This document shows, piece by piece, positions 13,205 through 47,617 of a stretch of 64,000 nt of DNA. Where the stretch lies: NCBI GenBank assembly GCA_028826165.1, contig JAPDFW010000114.1, positions 966,942-1,030,941 of the forward strand, given 5' to 3'. The position numbers and the translations under genes are program-made. Source of the DNA: Anaeramoeba ignava BMAN. Its lineage: Eukaryota; Protista; Anaeramoebae. The notes beneath the pieces were generated by a model, which did no database searches, had not been told where the DNA came from, and worked only from the letters and a program-made list of their open reading frames with translations. Position 1 is the stretch's first letter. The number at the start of each line of letters is the position of its first letter.

Positions 13205-16027
13205 ATGTTATTAAAAAGATTTTTCAGTCAAAGTTCAACAGGTTCAATGATAAATCGAGTGAATATTGGGATTTTTGGAGCGATGAATGCAGGAAAAAGT
13301 ACATTAATGAACTTAATTACACAACAACCAACAAGTATTGTTGATAAAAAACCAGGAACAACAGCAGATACCAAAATTGCTCTCATGGAAATTCATTCTT
13401 TGGGTCCTGTTAAATTGTTTGATACTGCTGGTTTAGATGAAATTGGTCCTCTTGGTTTAAAAAAAAAAGAAAAAACTGTTTCTGTTATTAAAGAAACTGA
13501 TCTTGTTTTATTGATTATTGATCCAACTGAAAATATTACTCTTGAAACTACAAATGAAATTTTACAAGTCTCAAAATTAAGAAGCAAAAAAGTAGATTTT
13601 TATTAATTCCAAAATTCAAATCAAAATCAAAATCAAAATCAATTAAAATCAAATTAAATTAAATTAAAATCTAAATCAAAATCAAAATCAAAATCAAAAT
13701 CAAAATCAATTTCAAATCAAATAAAATTAAAATTAAAATCAAAATCAAAATCAAAATCAAAATCAAATTAAATCAAAATTAAAATCAAAATCAAAATCAA
13801 AATCAAAATTAAAATTAAATTTAAATCAAATTAAATCAAAATCAAAATCAAATTAAATCAAAATTAAATTAAATTAAATTAAATCAAAATCAAAATTAAA
13901 ATCAAAATTAAATCAAAATCAAAATTAAAATCAAAATTAAAATCAAAATCAAAATTAAATCAAAATCAAAATCAAAAATTAAATCAAAATCAAAATTAAA
14001 ATCAAAATTAAAATCAAAATCAAAATCAAATTAAATCAAAATTAAATTAAATTAAATTAAATCAAAATCAAAATTAAAATCAAAATTAAATCAAAATCAA
14101 AATTAAAATCAAAATTAAAATCAAAATCAAAATCAAAATTAAAATCAAAATCAAAAATTAAATCAAAATCAAAATTAAAATCAAAATCAAAATCAAAATC
14201 AAAATCAAATTAAAAATTAAAAATCAAAATCAAAATCAAATTTAAATCAAAATCAAAATCAAAATTAAAATTAAAATCAAAATCAAATCAAAATCAAAAT
14301 CAAAATTAAAATCAAAATCAAAATCAAATCAAATCAAAATCAAAATTAAAATCAAATTTAAATTCAAAATCAAAATCAAATTAAATTGAAAATCAAAATC
14401 AAAATCAAAATCAAAATCAAAATCAAAATCAAAATTAAAATCAAAATCAAAATTAAAATTAAAATAAAATTAAAATTGTTTTATAGGTTTTGATTATTTA
14501 TAATATTTTTGCTGATAAAGTTAAAGCTTTTGAAGATTCAAATAACAAAACAATTAATCAAAGAATCAAGGAATTACATTCAAATTTTAAAAAACAATTC
14601 CGAAAGTAATTTATAAATAAAAAAGAAAGAAACTTTAGATAAATTAATAATTCATTTTAAAAATAGAGTGGAAAAATTAGAAGTTGATTTAAGTCAAAAA
14701 GATAGTGGAAAAATAATATTTGAATATATGAGAAAAAATTGGGCAGATTTTCAACCTGAAGTACCACTTCTTCCTTCAATAATTGGAGATGGAAATTCAG
14801 TTGTTTTTTTAAATATTCCAATGGATGAAGAAACACCAAGTGGAAGATTATTAAGGTTATTTAATATTTAATATTGAATATTTTATTTGAATATTTTATT
14901 TGAATATTTTATTTTGAATATTGAATATTGAATATTTATTTTTAATATTTAATATTGAATATTTAATATTGAATATTTATTTTTAATATTTAATATTTAT
15001 TTTGAATATTTAATATTGAATATTTATTTTGAATATTTATTTTGAATATTGAATATTTATTTTGAATATTTATTTTGAATATTTAATATTGAATATTTAT
15101 TTTGAATATTGAATATTTATTTTGAATATTTAATATTTAATATTTATTTTGAATATTTATTTTAATAGACCACAAGCAATGGCTCAAGAATTTCTTTTGA
15201 GAAATTGGATTTCAACTTTTGCATATAGAATGGATTTAAAAAAAGCAAGAAGTCCAAAAGAAGAAATAAGAAGAATAGAAAAAGAAAGATTTTTGAAAGC
15301 AATCAATTCAATCAAAAACAATTTATCATTATTAGTAACAGATAGTCAAGCTATTGATATAATTCATCCATGGACTCTTGATTCACAAGGAAATGAAATA
15401 GCAAATATTACTACATTTTCTATTATGATGGCAAATTATATGAGTGGAGGAAAATTAAATCGTTTTATTGAAGGATTAGATGCTTTTTCTAAATTGAAAA
15501 AAGGTGATAAAGTTTTAATTTGTGAAGCTTGTAATCATGATAGAATTCTTGATGATATTGGAACTAAACAAATACCTGATAAAATTAAAAAGAAATGGGG
15601 AGAAAATACAATAGAAATTGATTTTGCATTTGGAAGAGAATATCAAAATAAGAAAATTTCAGATTATAAAGGTTTGATTTAATTTAATTTAATTTAATTT
15701 AATATTTATTTAATATTTATTTAATTTTTTTTTATATTTATATTTAATTAGTTGCACTTCATTGTGGAGGTAAAAATAATAATTCATTTTATTATTTTAT
15801 TATTTTATTTTTTTATTTTTTGTTCCACTTTTTTTGATTAAAAATTTTTTGATTAAAATTTTTTTTATAATAAAGGTTGTATGATTGATAAACAAAAAAT
15901 GTCTTCTCGCCTTCAAGATTTAACAGATGCAGGAGTACCAATTACAAATTATGGAATTGTACTGTCTTATTTTAAATCAGATGAAGCATTAAAAAGAGTT
16001 CTTAAACCATGGATAAAGAAAAATTAA
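13205..16027 (+). CDS. hydF: [FeFe]-hydrogenase H-cluster maturation GTPase HydF with N-terminal organellar presequence
   Basis: G1 GAMNAGKS, G2 PGTT, G3 DTAG, VTDSQA, TTFSI, CEACNH and HCGGCMI..ITNYG (CxH..HCxxC FeS motif). The HCGG part lies in an 18-nt exon at 15752-15769. Approximate exons: 13205-13591, 14487-14605, 14668-14855, 15169-15671, 15752-15769, 15876-16027. Confidence 0.95.
13610..14480. repeat. (AAAATC/AAAATT)n tract inside HydF intron 1
   Basis: Lies between GT at 13592 and AG at 14485-14486. Confidence 0.9.
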
Positions 16028-38800: not shown

Positions 38801-38996
38801 AAAATTTTATTAGTTTCAAAATATACCCCTTTTAAAAAATTTAAAAAAAAACCCCTTTTTTTTGATCAATAAAAAAAAAATAAATTTAAAAGAAAAGATC
38901 CAAAAAAAGAAAATAAATCATTTTTCTTTTTATTTTTTAATTATTTTTTTAAATTTTTATTTTTTAATTTTTAAGTTTTTTTTTATTAGAAAAAAA

Positions 38997-39545
38997 ATGG
39001 AAAAAAAAGAAATAGAAGTACAAGAAGATTTTACAAAGAAAAACTCAGTATTAGATTTCAAAATGAAAGATATTAAAGGAGAAGAAGTAGATTTATCAAT
39101 TTACAAAGGAAAAGTAGTAATGATAGTAAATGTAGCAAGTAAATGTGGATTTACAAAACAATATGAAGGATTAGAATCTATTTATGAAAAATATAAAGAT
39201 CAAGGATTTGTGATTTTAGGATTTCCTGCAAATAATTTTTTGTGGCAAGAACCAAAAGGAAATTCAGAAATTTTGAAATTTTGTTCAACAAAATATCATG
39301 TCACTTTTCCAATGTTTAGTAAAATTTCAGTTAAAAAAGAACCTTTATATAAGTTTTTAACTTCAAAAGAAACTGATCCAAATTTTTCAGGAAAAATTAC
39401 TTGGAATTTTAATAAATTTATTATTGGAAGAAATGGGAAAATTGTCGCAAGATTTGGATCAAGAAAAACTCCAGAATCTGATGAAATAATTAAAACAATA
39501 GAAAAGGAATTAAAAGAAGAATTAAAAGAAGAAAAAGAATTTTAA
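38997..39545 (+). CDS. gpx: Cys-type glutathione peroxidase-family protein (bacterial-like)
   Basis: VNVASKCGFT, LGFPANNF..QEP and WNFNKF signatures; likely start is ATG 38997, since the upstream ORF extension is low-complexity. Confidence 0.95.
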   Translation: MEKKEIEVQEDFTKKNSVLDFKMKDIKGEEVDLSIYKGKVVMIVNVASKCGFTKQYEGLESIYEKYKDQGFVILGFPANNFLWQEPKGNSEILKFCSTKYHVTFPMFSKISVKKEPLYKFLTSKETDPNFSGKITWNFNKFIIGRNGKIVARFGSRKTPESDEIIKTIEKELKEELKEEKEF

Positions 39546-39867: not shown

Positions 39868-42800
39868 ATGGATAGCTCTTATGCACAACTTTTGGAAGAA
39901 TGGAAAAAAGTCGCAAGTGTAAGTTTATAAAATCAAAAATATAATTTTTTTAAATGCAAAAAAACAGACTTTTGCCAATTTGATCTTTTTGGAAATTAAT
40001 TATTTTTTTTTGTTCCTTTTTTTTTATTAATTTATATTAATTTATATTAAATTTAATTTTTCTTTGAATAGAATATTCTTCAACCAATGAAAATACAAGA
40101 ACCTCATGTTGGAAAAGTTAATGTTGTTGTTTCAACACCAAAATATTATTTTTCAGCTGGAGAAGATAATTTAATTTATCAATTTAATATTAAAGTAAAT
40201 ATTTGATTTTATTTTGATTTAGTTTAATTTAATTTGATTTAATTTAATTTAATTTTGATTTATTTTAATTTAAATATTTGATTTAATTTGATTTAATTTT
40301 GATTTGATTTGATTTAAATTTGATTTGATTTAATTTTGATTTATTTTGATTTGATTTAATTTAATTTGATTTGATTTGATTTGATTTAATTTAATTTAAA
40401 TATTTGGATTTGATTTGATTTAATTTTGATTTAATTTTGATTTAAATATTTTGATTTGATTTGATTTAATTTAATTTAATTTAATTTAATATTAATTTAA
40501 TTTAATTTAATTTAATTTAATTTAAATATTTGATTTAATTTGATTTAATTTAATTTGATTTGATTTAAATTTGATTTTGATTTAATTTTAATTTTTGATT
40601 TAAATATTTGATTTAATTTAATTTAATTTAATTTGATTTGATTTAATTTAATTTAATTTAATTTAATTTAATTTAATTTTGATTTAAATTTAATTTGATT
40701 TGATTTTAATTTAAATATTTGGATTTGATTTAATTTAATTTAATTTAATTTAAATTAATTTAATTTAATTTGATTTAATTTTAATTTAATTTAATTTGAT
40801 TTGATTTAATTTAATTTGATTTAAATATTTGGATTTGATTTAATTTAATTTGATTTAAATATTTGGATTTGATTTAATTTAATTTAATTTAATTTTAATT
40901 TAATTTTGATTTGATTTGATTTGATTTAATTTAATTTAAATTTGATTTAATTTAATTTAGTTTAAATATTTGGATTTGATTTAATTTGATTTAATTTAAT
41001 TTTAATTTAATTTTGATTTGATTTGATTTGATTTAATTTAATTTAATTTGGATTTAAATATTTAAATTTGATTTAATTTAATTTAATTTAATTTAATTTT
41101 GATTTAATTTGATTTAATTTTGATTTAAATATTTGGATTTAATTTTATTTAATTTAATTTGGATTTAAATATTTGGATTTGATTTGATTTAATTTTGATT
41201 TAATTTTAATTTAAATATTTGGATTTGATTTTAATTTAAATATTTGATTTAATTTAATTTAATTTAATTTAATTTAATTTAATTTTGATTTAATTTAATT
41301 TAATTTAATTTGGATTTAAATATTTGGATTTAATTTAATTTAATTTAATTTAAATGATTTAAATATTTGGATTTGATTTAATTTAATTTAATTTAATTTT
41401 GATTTAATTTAAATTTAATTTAATTTGATTTAATTTGATTTAATTTTGATTTGATTTTAATTTAATTTGATTTGATTTATTTTTTGAATTTAAATATTTG
41501 GATTTAATTTAATTTAATTTAATTTAATTTTGGATTTGATTTAATTTAAAATTTTGATTTGATTTGATTTGATTTTTTAAATATTTAAATTTGATTTAAT
41601 TTAATTTAAATTTGATTTAATTTAATTTAATTTAATTTAATTTAATTTAATTTTAATTTAGTTTAAATATTTGGATTTGATTTTAATTTAGTTTAAATAT
41701 TTGGATTTGATTTAATTTAATTTAATTTTAATTTAATTTAATTTGATTTAATTTGATTTAAATTAATTTAATTTGATTTAATTTAATTTTGATTTAATTT
41801 AAAATTAATTTGGATTTAAATATTTGGATTTAATTTGATTTAAATTAATTTGATTTGATTTAATTTAATTTTAATTTAATTTAATTTTAATATTTGGATT
41901 TAATTTGATTTAATTTAATTTAATTTGATTTAATTTGATTTAATTTAATTTAATTTAATTTAATTTAATTTAATTTAATTTAATTTAATTTTAATTTAAA
42001 TATTTGGATTTAATTTAATTTAATTTAAGTATTTGGATTTGATTTAATTTAATTTAATTTAATTTGATTTGATTTGATTTAATTTGATTTGATTTAATTT
42101 AATTTAATTTAAGTATTTGGATTTGATTTAATTTAATTTAATTTGATTTGATTTGATTTAATTTGATTTGATTTGATTTGATTTAATTTGATTTAAATGA
42201 TTTGATTTAATTTAATTTTAATTTAATTTTAATTTAATTTAATTTGATTTAATTTAATTTAATTTAATTTAATTTAATTTAATTTAATTTAATTTTGATT
42301 TAATTTTGATTTGATTTAATTTAAATTAAATAATTTGATTTGATTTGATTTAATTTAAATTAAATATTTGGATTTGATTTGATTTAATTTAGTTTAAATA
42401 TTTGGATTTGATTTTAATTTAATTTAATTTAAATGATTTGATTTAATTTAATTTAATTTAAATGATTTGATTTTAATTTAATTTAATTTAAATGATTTGA
42501 TTTAATTTAATTTAATTTAATTTAAATGATTTAATTTAATTTAATTTAATTTTGATTTAATTTAAATGATTTGATTTAATTTAATTTATTTAATTTTAAT
42601 TTTGATTTGATTTAATTTAAATTAAATAATTTGATTTTGATTTGATTTAATTAGACTGATGCGGAAATTCATGTTTATAAAAAACATTTATCACCAATAC
42701 ATTGCCTTCAAATTCAAGATAAATATATGATAAGTGGAGATGAGAATGGATTACTTGTTTGTTGGAATATCCAAAAAAGAGATTGTTCTTGGTCACAAAA

Positions 42801-45800
42801 TGCACATACAAATGGAGTTACTGCTATTCATATCGATAGAAATTTTCATTTATTTACTGGTGGAAACGATAATATGATTTATGAATGGGATATTGAAACA
42901 GGAAAGCAAATATCACGTTTTGAGGGGCACACAGCCAAAATTAATCAACTTTATTCAACATTTAATAAAAATCCGATTTTGTTTTCTTGTAGTGATGATA
43001 ATTTTGCATATTGTTGGGATTGTGTAAAATTTGAATATTTGATTTTTGAATTTGGTTTTTTTAATATTGAAAAAAAAAAATAGAAAACAAGAAAGAAATC
43101 GGTAAAATTTGCAGGTCATAAAGATAGCGTTTTATGTTTATTTTATGATGAATTATCAAGAGTTCTTTTTACAGGTTCTGCAGGTATTTTTTAATTTATT
43201 TTAATTTAATTTAATTTAATTTAATTTAATTTTAATTGAATTTAAAAAAAAAAAAGATAAAACTGTATTTTCTTGGGATATTAGAGTAAGTTCTTAAAAA
43301 AAGTTCTTAAAAAAGTTCTTAAAAAAAATTATTTTTTTTAAAAAAAAAGAAAGGATCAACAAACCGAAAATATATAGGAAACGAAAATGCAATTACACAA
43401 ATCCACGTGAACCAAAGCTTTTTATTTACATGCTGTAAAGATGGAAGACTTGGGGTAATCAAAATAAAAGCAAGCAAAAGAGACACATTCACATTTCTTG
43501 AAGGACATAAAGAAGAAATAACAAATTTAATTGTACTTCCTGATCGAATGATAACGTCTTCATTAGATAACACAATACGGCTTTGGAGACACAAGAGTAG
43601 CAGTTCTAAAGTGATATACGAAGGTCATACAAAGGGAATCACAACAATATCAATGAATCCTGAACAAATATTAATTTCAGGAGGAAAAGATTCGAAAGTG
43701 ATAAGATGGCCAAAAGTTGAAATTAAATCACGATCTGGATCAATCATTGTGGAAAGTAAGGAACAGAAGGAGGCGCAGTATAAGGATTACGACGAGACCA
43801 TTTTGCACAATAAGATTAGTCTTGAAAAAGTCTCCATTTGGGTTAATGACAAACAACATTCAGTGCCGGGTGATTTGAATATTATCGAAGCTTGTCGCTA
43901 TATCGGGGTTCCAGTACATTCTCTCTGCTACCATCCGCGTCTTCATCCTTTGTCGACTTGCAAATGCTGCGCAGTCGAAGTTGAAACTGGTCTCAATAAT
44001 CTTAGAAAAGCAGGTGCTTGTGCAACAATAGTCAAAAAGGGAATGAAAATTTATACAGATACTATCACTGTTAAAGACCAACAACGCCAGGCAATTCTCG
44101 AGCTAAGACTCAAACAGAGAAGCCGAGCACTTCTTTCCAAAGGCGAGACCTTCGATGATTCAACGGAATTTGGAAGGCTTCTGAGAGATATTTCGGATAT
44201 TTTTATTGATGACTCAAATAAGGCTATTCGAGTTGATTTATCAAAATGTATTGATTGCGCCAGATGCGCTCAAGTGTGCAAGTCTGTGCAGAAAATGGGT
44301 GTCATCTCATTTCCAGCAAAATCAATCAATGCGATAGAAACTGCTTTCCGAACAAATGGAAAGTATTTGATTGATACGCAATGTATTGCTTGTGGTCAAT
44401 GTTCTGTTTTTTGTCCAACTGGTGCTATTTCTGAATATGACAATACTCCTGAAGTAGAACGTGAACTCGAATCAGGCGGAAAGACTCTTGTTGTTGGAAT
44501 TGCTCCTTCTGTTCGTGTTACTTTATCTGAAGAATTTGGAAAAGCTCCTGGTGAGATTTCTGCTGGAAAGTTTGCTTCTGCTCTTAGAATGCTTGGTTTT
44601 CAATATGTTTTTGATGTTCAATTTTTTGCTGATTTAACAATTATGGAGGAAGGTTCAGAACTTTTGAAAAGGTTGAAAGATCCTGATGCTGTTTTGCCAA
44701 TGTTTACTTCTTGTTGTCCTGCATGGATTAATATGGTTGAGAAAGTATGTTTTGTGAATCAAATCAATTTAAATCAATTTAAATCAATTTTAAATCAATT
44801 CAAAACTAATTCAAATCCAATTCAAATTCAATTCAAATCCAATTCAAATTAAAATCAATTTAAATCAATTTAAAATCAAATTAAATTGATTTAATATTCA
44901 AAATATTAAATAAAAATAGCTTTATCCCGAACTTATTCCACATCTTTCAAGTGCAAAATCTCCTCAACAAATGTTTGGTGCAATTGTTAAATCTTATTTT
45001 GCTAAGAAAATTAAAGTAAAAAGAAAAGATATTTATTGTGTATCAATTATGCCATGCACAGCCAAAAAACAAGAATTAAGAAGAGAACAAATGCAAACTA
45101 ATGGTATTCGAGATGTAGATGTAAGTTTAACTGTTCGAGAAATTGCAAGAATGTTTAAAAAAAAGAATATTGATTGGGAAAAAATAGTTGAAGGTGAATT
45201 TGATGATCCATTAGGTACATCTTCAAGTTCAGGATCTTTATTTGCTGCAACTGGAGGAGTTATGGTAAATAACAATATCAATATCAAAATCAAAATTCAA
45301 ATTCAAAACCAAAATCAAAATCAAAATCAAAATCAAAATCAAAATCAAAATCAATATCAAAATCAAAATCAAAATCAAAATCAAAATCAAAATCAAAATC
45401 AAAATCAAAATTAAAATCAAAATCAAAATCAATATCAAAACCAAAATTAAAATTAAAATCAAAATCAATATCAAAATTAAAATCAAAATCAAAATTAAAA
45501 TAAATCAAAATCAAAATCAAAATCAAATTCAAATTCAAAATCAAAATTAAAAATCAAAATCAAAATAAAAATCAAAATCAAAATCAAAATTAAAAATCAA
45601 AATCAAAATCAAAATTAAAATTAAAATCAAAATCAAAATCAAAATCAAAATCAAAATCAAAATCAAAATCAAAATCAAAATCAAAATCAAAATCAAAATC
45701 AAAATCAAAATTAAAATCAAAATCAAAATCAAAATTAAAATCAAAATCAAAATCAAAATCAATATCAAATTCAAAATTAAAATCAAAATCAAAATCAAAA

Positions 45801-47188
45801 TCAAAATCAATATTAAAATCAAAATCAAAATCAAAATCAATATAAAAATCAATATTAAAATCAAAATTAAAATCAAAATCAAAATCAAAATTAAAATCAA
45901 AATAAATCAAAATCAAATTCAAAATCAAAATTAAAATCAAAATCAATATTAAAATCAAAATCAAAATTAAAATCAAAATCAAAATATAAATTAAAGGAAG
46001 CTGCTTTAAGAACAGCTTATGAAATTGAAACAGGAGAAATATTTCCAAAATTAACTTTCCAAGAAATAAGAGGATTGGAAAAATTCAAATTAGGAGAAGT
46101 AACTATCAAAAACAAAGAATTACAAGTAGGAGTTCTGAACAGTGGAGCAGCAATTCATGATTTCATTCATAAATTCAAAAAAGGAGATCTTCAAACGGCA
46201 AAAAATGAAAAAATATCAAATTTGATATTTGTAGAATTTATGGCATGCCCAGGAGGATGTATAGGAGGAGGAGGACAACCAAGATCCAGCATAAACATTC
46301 TACCACAAAGAATAGAAGCAGTTTATAACAACGAATTTTCATTACCTTTTCGAAAATCGCATGATAATGAGAAAATCAAGGAACTTTATTCAGAATTTTT
46401 AAAAGAACCTTTATCTGAAAAATCAGAAGAATTACTCCACACAAGATACAAACCAAACCAGCGTCATGAAGAAGCAGAGGTTCATAAATCAACTGATACT
46501 TTAAGTATTTTCCAAGAAGGTCTCATTCCCAAAAATTCAGTTCTTGTTTTATTTGGTTCACAAACAGGAACTGCAGAGTTGGCTGCTATTAAAATCACTC
46601 AAAATTTATTGAAGGCAAAAATCAAAGCTAGACTTGTTGAAATGAATCATTATAAAGTCGGCAATTTGATTTCTGAATTGTTTGTTATTTTTGTTACTTC
46701 CACTTTTTGGGAAGGTTCTTTTCCAGAAAATGCAATCGAGTTTTGGAATGATTTGCAAAAATTAACTACTCGTTTAAGAAAATTGAGATTTGCAATATTT
46801 GGTTTAGGAAATTCAACATATGCTCATTTTAATCATGCTGGTCAATTACTTCAATCTCAAATGCAAAAGCTTGGTGCAATAGAAATGCATGATTTTGGAC
46901 GAGGAGATTGTGAAGCTGTAGAAGGGTAAACAGATATTTTTCGATTAAATATCAAATTTTGAATTTTGAATTTTGAATATTAAATATTAAATATTGAATT
47001 GAATTAAATATTGAATTGTAAATTGAATATTAAATTGAATATTGAATTGTAAATTGAATATTAAATTAAATTAAATTTTGATTTCATTTTTATTTTAATT
47101 TAGGTATTTAACTGAATTAAAACCTTGGATTGAAACTCTTGTAAAAGTTTTACATAAAAATATTCCAAAAGATATGAGAGTTAATTGA
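39868..47188 (+). CDS. hydA: WD40-repeat / [FeFe]-hydrogenase / flavodoxin fusion protein
   Basis: Exons 39868-39918, 40072-40194, 42655-43023, 43084-43183, 43257-43285, 43350-44744, 44920-45264, 45997-46925, 47104-47188. WD40 repeats (GH..W[DNR]), [2Fe-2S] domain, two [4Fe-4S] motifs (CIDCARCAQVC; CIACGQCSVFCP), H-cluster motifs FTSCCPAW, MPCTAKKQE and EFMACPGGCIGGGGQP, then flavodoxin (LFGSQTGTAE..TSTFWEG..FGLGNSTY..F..RGD..W). Confidence 0.92.
40200..42650. repeat. (ATTTA/ATTTG)n tract filling a 2.46-kb hydrogenase intron
   Basis: Between GT at 40195 and AG at 42653-42654. Confidence 0.9.
45270..45990. repeat. (AAAATC)n tract in a hydrogenase intron
   Basis: Between GT at 45265 and AG at 45995-45996. 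Confidence 0.9.
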
Positions 47189-47617
47189 ATTGTTCTTTTC
47201 AAACTGTTTTTTTTTTTTCAAAATACAAAAAAAAGAACCAAAAAAAAAATTATTTTTTTTGATTGATCAAATTTGTTTTAATTTTTCTTTTAATTTTTAC
47301 TTCTATTCTTTCTCTTTTAATCTTTCTCTTTTTATAATTTGATTTTTTTTAATTTGATTTTTTTAAAAAGTTTTGCCAGAAAAAAATAAAAAAGAAAATT
47401 TAAAAAAAGATCTTTTTATTTTGAATATTTTAAAATAGAAAATTTGTTTAAAATTTAAACTTCTTCTTCTTTTTTTTATTTATTTTTTTATTTCAAAAAT
47501 TTTTTTTTTAATTTTGTTTTTCATTTTTCATTTTTCATTTTCTTTCTTTGAAATTTTTTTCGTTTTTTTTTTTTCTTTTATATAATAAAAAAAACAAATT
47601 ATTTTACTTAAATTTAA

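Follow-up and report, generated by a model that had tools for sequence, protein, structure and literature searches.

Positions 39868-47188 of a 64,000-nucleotide stretch of the Anaeramoeba ignava genome (hereafter the window; contig C104:966942-1030941 of a 42.8 Mb assembly) hold one nine-exon gene on the forward strand. Its 1141-residue product has an eight-bladed WD40 propeller at the N-terminus, connected by a ~35-residue disordered linker to a [2Fe-2S] domain, after which come two [4Fe-4S] motifs, the H-domain of an [FeFe]-hydrogenase and a flavodoxin. The product is already in GenBank as 'iron hydrogenase [Anaeramoeba ignava]' and is referred to here as P0152. To build the exon model, the window was searched with P0152 by tblastn and exon ends were refined by splice sites read in the sequence. 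The deposited protein (1141 aa) was placed over nine exons, the larger single-exon high-scoring segment pairs being 98-100% identical; the exon lengths add up to 3426 nt, i.e. 1141 codons plus the TGA stop at 47186-47188, and every intron begins with GT and ends with AG (Table 1). A sequence-only reading of this DNA had proposed the same overall structure; the ends of exons 1 (39918), 2 (40194) and 5 (43285) had to be adjusted slightly.

The fusion of the three modules does not depend on splice calls, as that reading had argued, because both fusion points lie inside exons. We searched the exons individually and unjoined against Pfam, while all full-length analyses used deposited P0152. In exon 6 (43350-44744), WD40 repeats (exon residues 5-120) were followed by Fer2_4, a 4Fe-4S dicluster domain and the start of Fe_hyd_lg_C, which confirmed that the last WD40 repeats and the [2Fe-2S] domain share a single exon. 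The one open frame of this exon runs from the last three WD40 blades through the linker and the [2Fe-2S] domain, past both [4Fe-4S] motifs, into the H-domain, whose beginning includes TSCCP. Likewise, the end of Fe_hyd_lg_C, Fe_hyd_SSU and Flavodoxin_1 were matched in one frame at 45997-46929, so that the end of the H-domain and the flavodoxin indeed sit together in exon 8 (45997-46925). The remaining Pfam matches were to the middle of Fe_hyd_lg_C (44971-45270) and to WD40 repeats (42655-43023).

The WD40-hydrogenase fusion is transcribed and spliced

To compare the gene model with sequencing data, contigs of four public runs (X1-X4) were placed on positions 42640-47200; exons 1 and 2 lie outside that stretch. 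Runs X3 and X4 were taken to be RNA-derived because their contigs are intron-less (the automatic guess for X3 was 'DNA?'). Contig 17 of X3 consists of exon 3, exon 4, 36 letters that did not align, and exon 6 up to 43930. The 36 letters, which stand between exon 4 and 43357, are exon 5 (29 nt) and the first 7 nt of exon 6, and the 197 leading letters of this contig come close to the length expected for exons 1 and 2 (174 nt) with a short leader. In X3, contig 19 links exon 6 (from 43992) with exons 7 and 8, and contig 20 links exon 8 with exon 9; in X4, contig 26 contains exons 6, 7 and 8, and contig 22 covers 43525-43930. GT..AG joints were seen in RNA contigs at 43023>43084, 44744>44920 and 46925>47104. 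Together, the spliced contigs chain exons 3 to 9, with breaks only at a bubble of three single-nucleotide polymorphisms (43901-44021), where contigs overlap.

The WD40-hydrogenase-flavodoxin fusion is therefore real, transcribed and spliced. A misassembly around 43700-43850, which the sequence-only reading had named as its weak point, was checked and is contradicted by RNA contigs (43357-43930) that cross this region and are spliced to the upstream WD40 exons. What might speak for separate WD40 and hydrogenase genes wrongly joined by assembly or gene modelling is the DNA contig coverage of 43252-43900, which is almost empty in X1 and X2 (depth ~7 in one X1 bin, otherwise zero), and an A. flamelloides protein model, P0157, whose extra B-box and filamin domains could come from a merged neighbour. 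Such depth holes, however, are filter artefacts that prove nothing, and the junction lies inside one uninterrupted exon of 465 codons. The junction recurs in three paralogs. It is found within one exon in the A. ignava paralogs on contigs C1 (P0001 residues 225-694, one high-scoring segment pair) and C138, and in an independent A. flamelloides assembly (GCA_027625915.1), where residues 169-564 of P0155 form one exon with WD40 blades and the CYH [2Fe-2S] motif. We regard an artefact as effectively refuted.

Three linked sites within exon 6, at 43931, 43961 and 43991 (30 bp apart), are polymorphic, with both variants at ~40-60% in the DNA and RNA runs, so either the gene has two expressed alleles or a very recent duplicate has been collapsed. 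All three changes are third-position and synonymous (TAC/TAT, TGC/TGT and GGT/GGA), which fits purifying selection. Two further sites differ from the assembly, which has A at both: position 42800 is C in most runs and 42960 is G in all four. The change at 42800 affects a second codon position (Asn107 to Thr) and may be due to an allele, to variation between strains or to a mistake in the assembly.

Table 1. Exons, domains and motifs of the WD40-hydrogenase gene and pieces of the HydF gene, in window coordinates.
Feature	Position	Strand	Content	Evidence
Exon 1	39868-39918	+	aa 1-17; short acidic N-terminal helix, without presequence	tblastn, sequence read
Exon 2	40072-40194	+	aa 18-58; first WD40 blade	tblastn, sequence read
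Exon 3	42655-43023	+	aa 59-181; WD40 blades	Pfam WD40, E=3.9e-15; RNA joint
Exon 4	43084-43183	+	WD40	X3 contig 17, aligned directly after exon 3
Exon 5	43257-43285	+	29 nt; WD40	Unaligned letters of X3 contig 17; P0152 agrees
Exon 6	43350-44744	+	aa 225-689; 465 codons	Pfam; RNA contigs X3-17 and X4-22
Exon 7	44920-45264	+	aa 690-804; middle of H-domain	Pfam; RNA joint 44744>44920 in X3 and X4
Exon 8	45997-46925	+	aa 805-1114; end of H-domain, small-subunit-like region, linker 2, most of flavodoxin	Pfam; RNA
Exon 9	47104-47188	+	last 27 aa and stop	X3 RNA joint; tblastn
Eight-bladed WD40 beta-propeller	40078-43712, across introns	+	aa 20-345	AlphaFold2, repeat period, structure matches
Disordered linker between propeller and hydrogenase	43713-43829	+	aa 346-384; 13-23% identity within the family	pLDDT <50 for residues 350-381
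[2Fe-2S] ferredoxin-like domain FS2	43830-44072	+	Cys417, 428, 431 and 448	Pfam Fer2_4
Two [4Fe-4S] motifs, FS4A and FS4B	44223-44447	+	Cys524/527/530/534 and Cys569/572/575/579	Pfam Fer4 families
H-cluster motif L1, TSCCP	44706-44720	+	proton-relay Cys679, ligand Cys680	
H-cluster motif L2, MPCTAKK	45049-45069	+	in exon 7	
H-cluster motif L3	46237-46281	+	in exon 8	
Flavodoxin (FMN) domain	46537-47185	+	aa 985-1141	Flavodoxin_1, E=4.8e-25; pLDDT ~85
HydF exon pieces	13253-13768, 15278-15679, 15875-15976	+		TIGR03918; 114.7, 91.1 and 32.4 bits

The window is very AT-rich, with a G+C content of 7-9% in introns and 22-39% in exons. Intron 2 (40195-42654, 2.46 kb) is a (GATTT/AATTT)n pentanucleotide microsatellite with a G-only skew and a G+C content of 7-9% over 40500-42500, and intron 7 (45265-45996, 732 bp) is a complementary (AAATC)n microsatellite; both introns are almost wholly composed of such repeats, at 7-13% G+C. 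Just 5' of the gene, an open reading frame on the forward strand (38862-39545) resembles, by eye, a Cys-type glutathione peroxidase (NVASKCGFT, WNFNKF).

The hydrogenase retains the residues of a catalytic enzyme

The three H-cluster motifs were found intact in the protein (TSCCP, MPCTAKK and FMACPGGCIGGGGQP), including the proton-transfer cysteine in TSCCP that the sequence-only reading had pointed out. They follow the pattern of group A HydA, with L1 TSCCP, L2 MPCxxKxxE and L3 ExMxCxxGCxxGGGQP, and the H-cluster ligands are C680, C735, C888 and C892. In the family alignment, using the residue numbering of the Clostridium pasteurianum enzyme CpI, P0152 keeps all four ligands (C300, C355, C499 and C503), the complete proton relay (C299, E279, S319, E282 and R286) and the H-cluster environment (K358, M353 and M497). 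The four FS2 cysteines and the eight cysteines of FS4A and FS4B are intact as well, those of FS2 being conserved in all 12 family members. Over its full length, the hydrogenase part matches the HydA1 structure 8a6t (E=4.7e-131) and CpI. The His-ligated FS4C site was absent by two measures, since Pfam gave no PF10588 match and the His/Cys ligands are replaced in the alignment to 8a6t HydA1; FS4C is lacking throughout the clade of fused hydrogenases too.

The flavodoxin domain, which would bind flavin mononucleotide (FMN), carries the motifs GSQTGTAE, STFWEGSFPENA and FGLGNSTY, which are conserved in the family. The flavin adenine dinucleotide (FAD) and NAD(P)H domains of CysJ (PF00667 and PF00175) were not found by Pfam in P0152, which stops 27 aa after exon 8, and they are likewise absent from the sister proteins P0006, P0024 and P0180.

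The genome also encodes the three hydrogenase maturases. HydE was found on contig C82 (309 bits, above the cut-off) and HydG as exon pairs on contigs C84 and C62, while HydF lies inside the window (13253-15976, forward strand), ~24 kb upstream of the WD40-hydrogenase. As this is a eukaryote, the linkage of the two genes is probably coincidental. By its residues, the hydrogenase is apparently fully functional and of the catalytic type.

An eight-bladed propeller on a flexible linker

The N-terminal module was modelled with AlphaFold2 as part of P0152, from an alignment of 33 sequences; the mean predicted local distance difference test score (pLDDT) was 84.6 and the predicted template modelling score (pTM) 0.56. 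Residues 20-345 form 32 strands in eight sets of four at a pLDDT of ~95. By Pfam and the model, tandem units of ~40 residues of the GH...WD type close into a propeller; there are eight such units, and WD-type strand ends recur every ~41 residues. Among solved structures, the best matches were the designed eight-bladed proteins Tako8 and Ika8; the propeller resembles designed or generic WD40 proteins. In addition to the linker behind the propeller, the model contains a second low-confidence linker at residues 959-975 (pLDDT <50). The low pTM of 0.56 and the disordered linkers suggest that the modules may move independently, as beads on flexible linkers, and we claim no contacts between them.

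The top loops of the propeller are slightly more conserved than the bottom loops (0.61 versus 0.50, p=0.02), the positions concerned being mostly structural and thus uninformative. A search for the donor of the propeller yielded no candidate. The nearest non-hydrogenase WD40 domains in the genome are only 27-34% identical; in the large protein library, the best WD40-only matches were long WD40 proteins of a generic kind, which came from metagenomes, from a fungus and from a bacterial metagenome-assembled genome. Within the genome, the nearest relatives of the propeller outside the hydrogenases are two proteins of ~750-776 aa in which an N-terminal WD40 propeller precedes a BAR domain; SH3 was matched weakly in both. 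One is encoded on contig C70 (L019:1168-3495, ~299.6-301.9 kb) and the other on C104 itself, outside the window (L020:1204-3444, ~39.4-41.7 kb). This WD40-BAR architecture is unusual and could be relevant to how membranes are remodelled in Anaeramoeba, whose symbionts are held in deep invaginations.

WD40-hydrogenases form a single clade within Anaeramoeba

When exon 6 was compared by phmmer with 1.84 billion representative proteins, matches that span the WD40-hydrogenase junction came from Anaeramoeba only (P0001, P0003, P0004 and P0007). None of the other strong matches spans the junction: they were either WD40-only proteins or hydrogenases that start close to residue 1 of their own sequence. 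In the databases, P0152 and 11 related proteins go by the names 'iron hydrogenase' or 'hypothetical protein'. A. ignava has four members, on contigs C104 (the present gene), C1, C138 and C127; for A. flamelloides, a word search with P0001 gave 31 member sequences from two strains in at least eight clusters at 90% identity. All 12 family members examined, from two species, retain a propeller with eight complete blades, and proteins of A. ignava and A. flamelloides share ~37% identity on average (bioRxiv version of PMC11550330).

The searchable literature yielded no description of a WD40-hydrogenase, and the WD40 proteins that appear in the Anaeramoeba papers within it are otherwise symbiont effectors only. 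The proteins listed there as candidates for lateral gene transfer include 3, 18 and 21 with WD40 repeats per genome, which may or may not include WD40-hydrogenases (Supplementary Data 5F, PMC11550330). The proposal that no WD40-hydrogenase had been known thus stands as far as other genera and the searchable literature are concerned, but not for the databases, where 12 had already been deposited.

To place the family, we computed a maximum likelihood tree of the hydrogenase core (48 rows, 570 columns; LG+C20 with posterior mean site frequencies). The 12 WD40-bearing proteins form one clade (support 94/85), which was recovered in 93% of the bootstrap trees. Its sister group is the flavodoxin-only HydA of Trimastix and Paratrimastix (98/98), and both are nested in the eukaryotic HydA-CysJ/flavodoxin clade (100/100, 36 rows); the canonical A. 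ignava HydA proteins (contigs C83 and C90) branch elsewhere in the tree. The present gene and those on C1 and C138 make up an A. ignava-specific trio. Given a single clade in this position, the propeller was therefore probably added once, N-terminally, to a metamonad HydA-flavodoxin enzyme in the Anaeramoeba stem, and duplications followed.

Two members have lost part of the catalytic set while keeping all Fe-S cysteines, and both sit on long branches: P0004 (A. ignava, C127) carries C299N, E279L, K358N and Q325N, and P0007 (A. flamelloides) carries E282L, K358V and M497R. In the family member P0157 of A. flamelloides (1707 aa), the propeller is preceded by ~560 additional residues that contain a B-box zinc finger and filamin repeats; either the family has a TRIM-like extension here or two genes were merged in the model. 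P0002, a predicted protein of 4122 aa from Cyanophora paradoxa (EukProt), has seven tandem [FeFe]-hydrogenase H-domains with flavodoxin and FAD-binding domains; here the gene model has probably fused the genes of a tandem array.

Localization

No presequence was recognized in the protein, in agreement with the sequence-only reading: the N-terminus is acidic (net charge -1 over the first 20 residues), the propeller begins at about residue 20, and the helix that AlphaFold2 places at residues 2-15 has a low pLDDT. The A. flamelloides members start directly with a WD repeat. By comparison, the open reading frames of the canonical HydA on C83 and C90 have basic N-terminal extensions of ~28 aa, and Anaeramoeba targeting sequences are reported to have a charge of +3 to +4 (PMC9746703). 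In Paratrimastix, the HydA paralogs were assigned a cytosolic location by localization of organelle proteins by isotope tagging after differential centrifugation (LOPIT-DC), while HydE and HydF were organellar (PMC9746703). No fused hydrogenase was detected in the organelle proteome of Paratrimastix, and the authors of that study call their localization unknown (PMC10703272). The missing presequence, together with the cytosolic HydA in a species of the nearest relatives, leads us to infer a cytosolic location.

Discussion

The WD40-hydrogenase belongs to a known kind of enzyme, the fused eukaryotic [FeFe]-hydrogenases, to which it adds a new accessory domain, and has been deposited under uninformative names. 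It shares the catalytic core, the N-terminal [2Fe-2S] domain and two [4Fe-4S] motifs, the lack of FS4C and the C-terminal FMN domain with the fused hydrogenases of Trimastix, Paratrimastix, Trichomonas, Pygsuia, Stygiella and Pelomyxa, in which a NuoG-like N-terminus is followed by HydA and then by CysJ or flavodoxin (PMC10703272). It differs from all of these by the additional N-terminal eight-bladed propeller on its flexible linker and by forming a multigene family within one genus; unlike the CysJ-fused forms, it has no FAD/NADPH half and therefore could not take electrons from NADPH by itself. The F- and H-domains can be aligned end to end with those of CpI (4xdc) and of Thermoanaerobacter kivui HydA1 (8a6t), with E=1e-108 to 1e-131, and agree fully with these group A enzymes in the ligands of the H-cluster and in the proton-transfer chain. 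Relative to them, FS4C has been lost, flavodoxin and WD40 domains have been added, and the gene is a eukaryotic one with introns.

Our preferred reading, to which we give a probability of roughly 0.6, is that the gene encodes an intact, expressed, Anaeramoeba-specific [FeFe]-hydrogenase that would be cytosolic, docked by its propeller, and active in H2 evolution. In such an enzyme, low-potential electrons, for instance from pyruvate:ferredoxin oxidoreductase (PFO), would be taken up at the FMN domain and/or FS2 and travel over the Fe-S clusters to the H-cluster, where H2 would be evolved in the cytosol. The propeller would stand outside catalysis, as a tethered docking module by which the enzyme is positioned at a partner, either a protein or a structure.

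Several observations weigh against this preference. The WD40 domain diverges faster than the enzyme, both relative to the closest paralog (49% versus 73% identity) and between P0152 and the A. flamelloides members (~30% versus ~55%), and an analysis of surface conservation found no recognizable ligand patch on the propeller, the conserved positions being mostly the structural GH, D, S/T and W. The branch of the present copy is ~2.7 times that of its sister on C1, which may reflect relaxed constraint. As P0004 and P0007 lack some catalytic residues, the family is not uniformly enzymatic. Moreover, the maturases may be organellar, which would leave the maturation of a cytosolic enzyme unexplained, and import into hydrogenosomes without a presequence is known in other metamonads, e.g. 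Trichomonas.

The last two points also favour an alternative in which the protein is a hydrogenosomal enzyme, imported without a presequence, with the propeller organizing it together with PFO, ferredoxin or NuoE/F-like partners. The organellar HydE and HydF of Paratrimastix (PMC9746703) and the stated uncertainty about where large fused hydrogenases reside (PMC10703272) are compatible with it. We nevertheless consider such a location unlikely, as the acidic N-terminus leads straight into a stable eight-bladed propeller, canonical HydA is encoded by other genes of the genome, which do have basic N-terminal extensions, and the organelle proteome of Paratrimastix did not contain the fused forms (PMC10703272). 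The four A. ignava paralogs, the low WD40 identity and the branch length could also be read as signs of a neutral or decaying paralog, i.e. a recent duplicate kept by chance in which the propeller is a passenger domain. This seems improbable for a frame of 1141 codons that is intact over nine exons, transcribed and correctly spliced, in which the polymorphisms seen are all synonymous; furthermore, eight blades have been kept in 12/12 members across two species as distant as A. ignava and A. flamelloides.

A non-catalytic role would make the protein an H2 or redox sensor or regulator with the propeller as transmitter, or a scaffold for Fe-S assembly resembling Cia1/Nar1/Tah18. The loss of proton-relay and H-cluster environment residues in P0004 and P0007, which keep their Fe-S cysteines, would fit such a role, as would the long branch of the present copy, and WD40 domains are typical signalling scaffolds. 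However, no catalytic or proton-relay residue has been lost from P0152 itself, C299 included, which disfavours a sensor; it is also nested within catalytic HydA-flavodoxin/CysJ enzymes. Sensory [FeFe]-hydrogenases (HydS, groups C/D) likewise combine a hydrogenase core with a non-redox accessory domain, but they have PAS-type domains and altered proton-relay residues. The Anaeramoeba protein has group A residues throughout and WD40 in place of PAS; with no PAS or other sensor domain in Pfam and an intact proton pathway, it was not classed with HydS. The sequence-only reading had noted that WD40, hydrogenase-like and flavodoxin folds also occur together in Cia1, Nar1/NARF and Tah18, while holding that the motifs are those of a true hydrogenase. 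The latter view was borne out by the relay cysteine and by the position of the core inside the catalytic HydA clade, and these same features speak against the analogy. Nar1 lacks the catalytic TSCCP motif and the relay residues, and Cia1 has seven blades, whereas the Anaeramoeba protein is one polypeptide with both TSCCP and relay residues and an eight-bladed propeller; no Cia1/CIAO1 entry was among the 60 best solved-structure matches of this propeller, and the flavodoxin groups with HydA-fused FMN domains. A Cia1/Nar1/Tah18-like module is thus not supported. Overall, we judge a non-catalytic role to be unlikely.

The propeller offers an experimental handle on how large fused hydrogenases are used by anaerobic protists, and where in the cell: its partner would reveal where, and with what, a eukaryotic H2-producing enzyme assembles. 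The relevance is heightened by the biology of Anaeramoeba, which centres on the transfer of H2 to sulfate-reducing symbionts. The occurrence of intact and catalytically dead members side by side also provides a natural series for a hydrogenase that is turning into something else. A more specific and quite speculative proposal is that the propeller anchors a cytosolic, flavodoxin-fed enzyme to a defined structure, such as the hydrogenosome surface or the symbiosome membrane, so that H2 of the host is released beside the sulfate-reducing symbionts, and that the expansion of the family (four copies in A. ignava and roughly 15 per A. flamelloides genome) and its dead members are adaptations to syntrophy.

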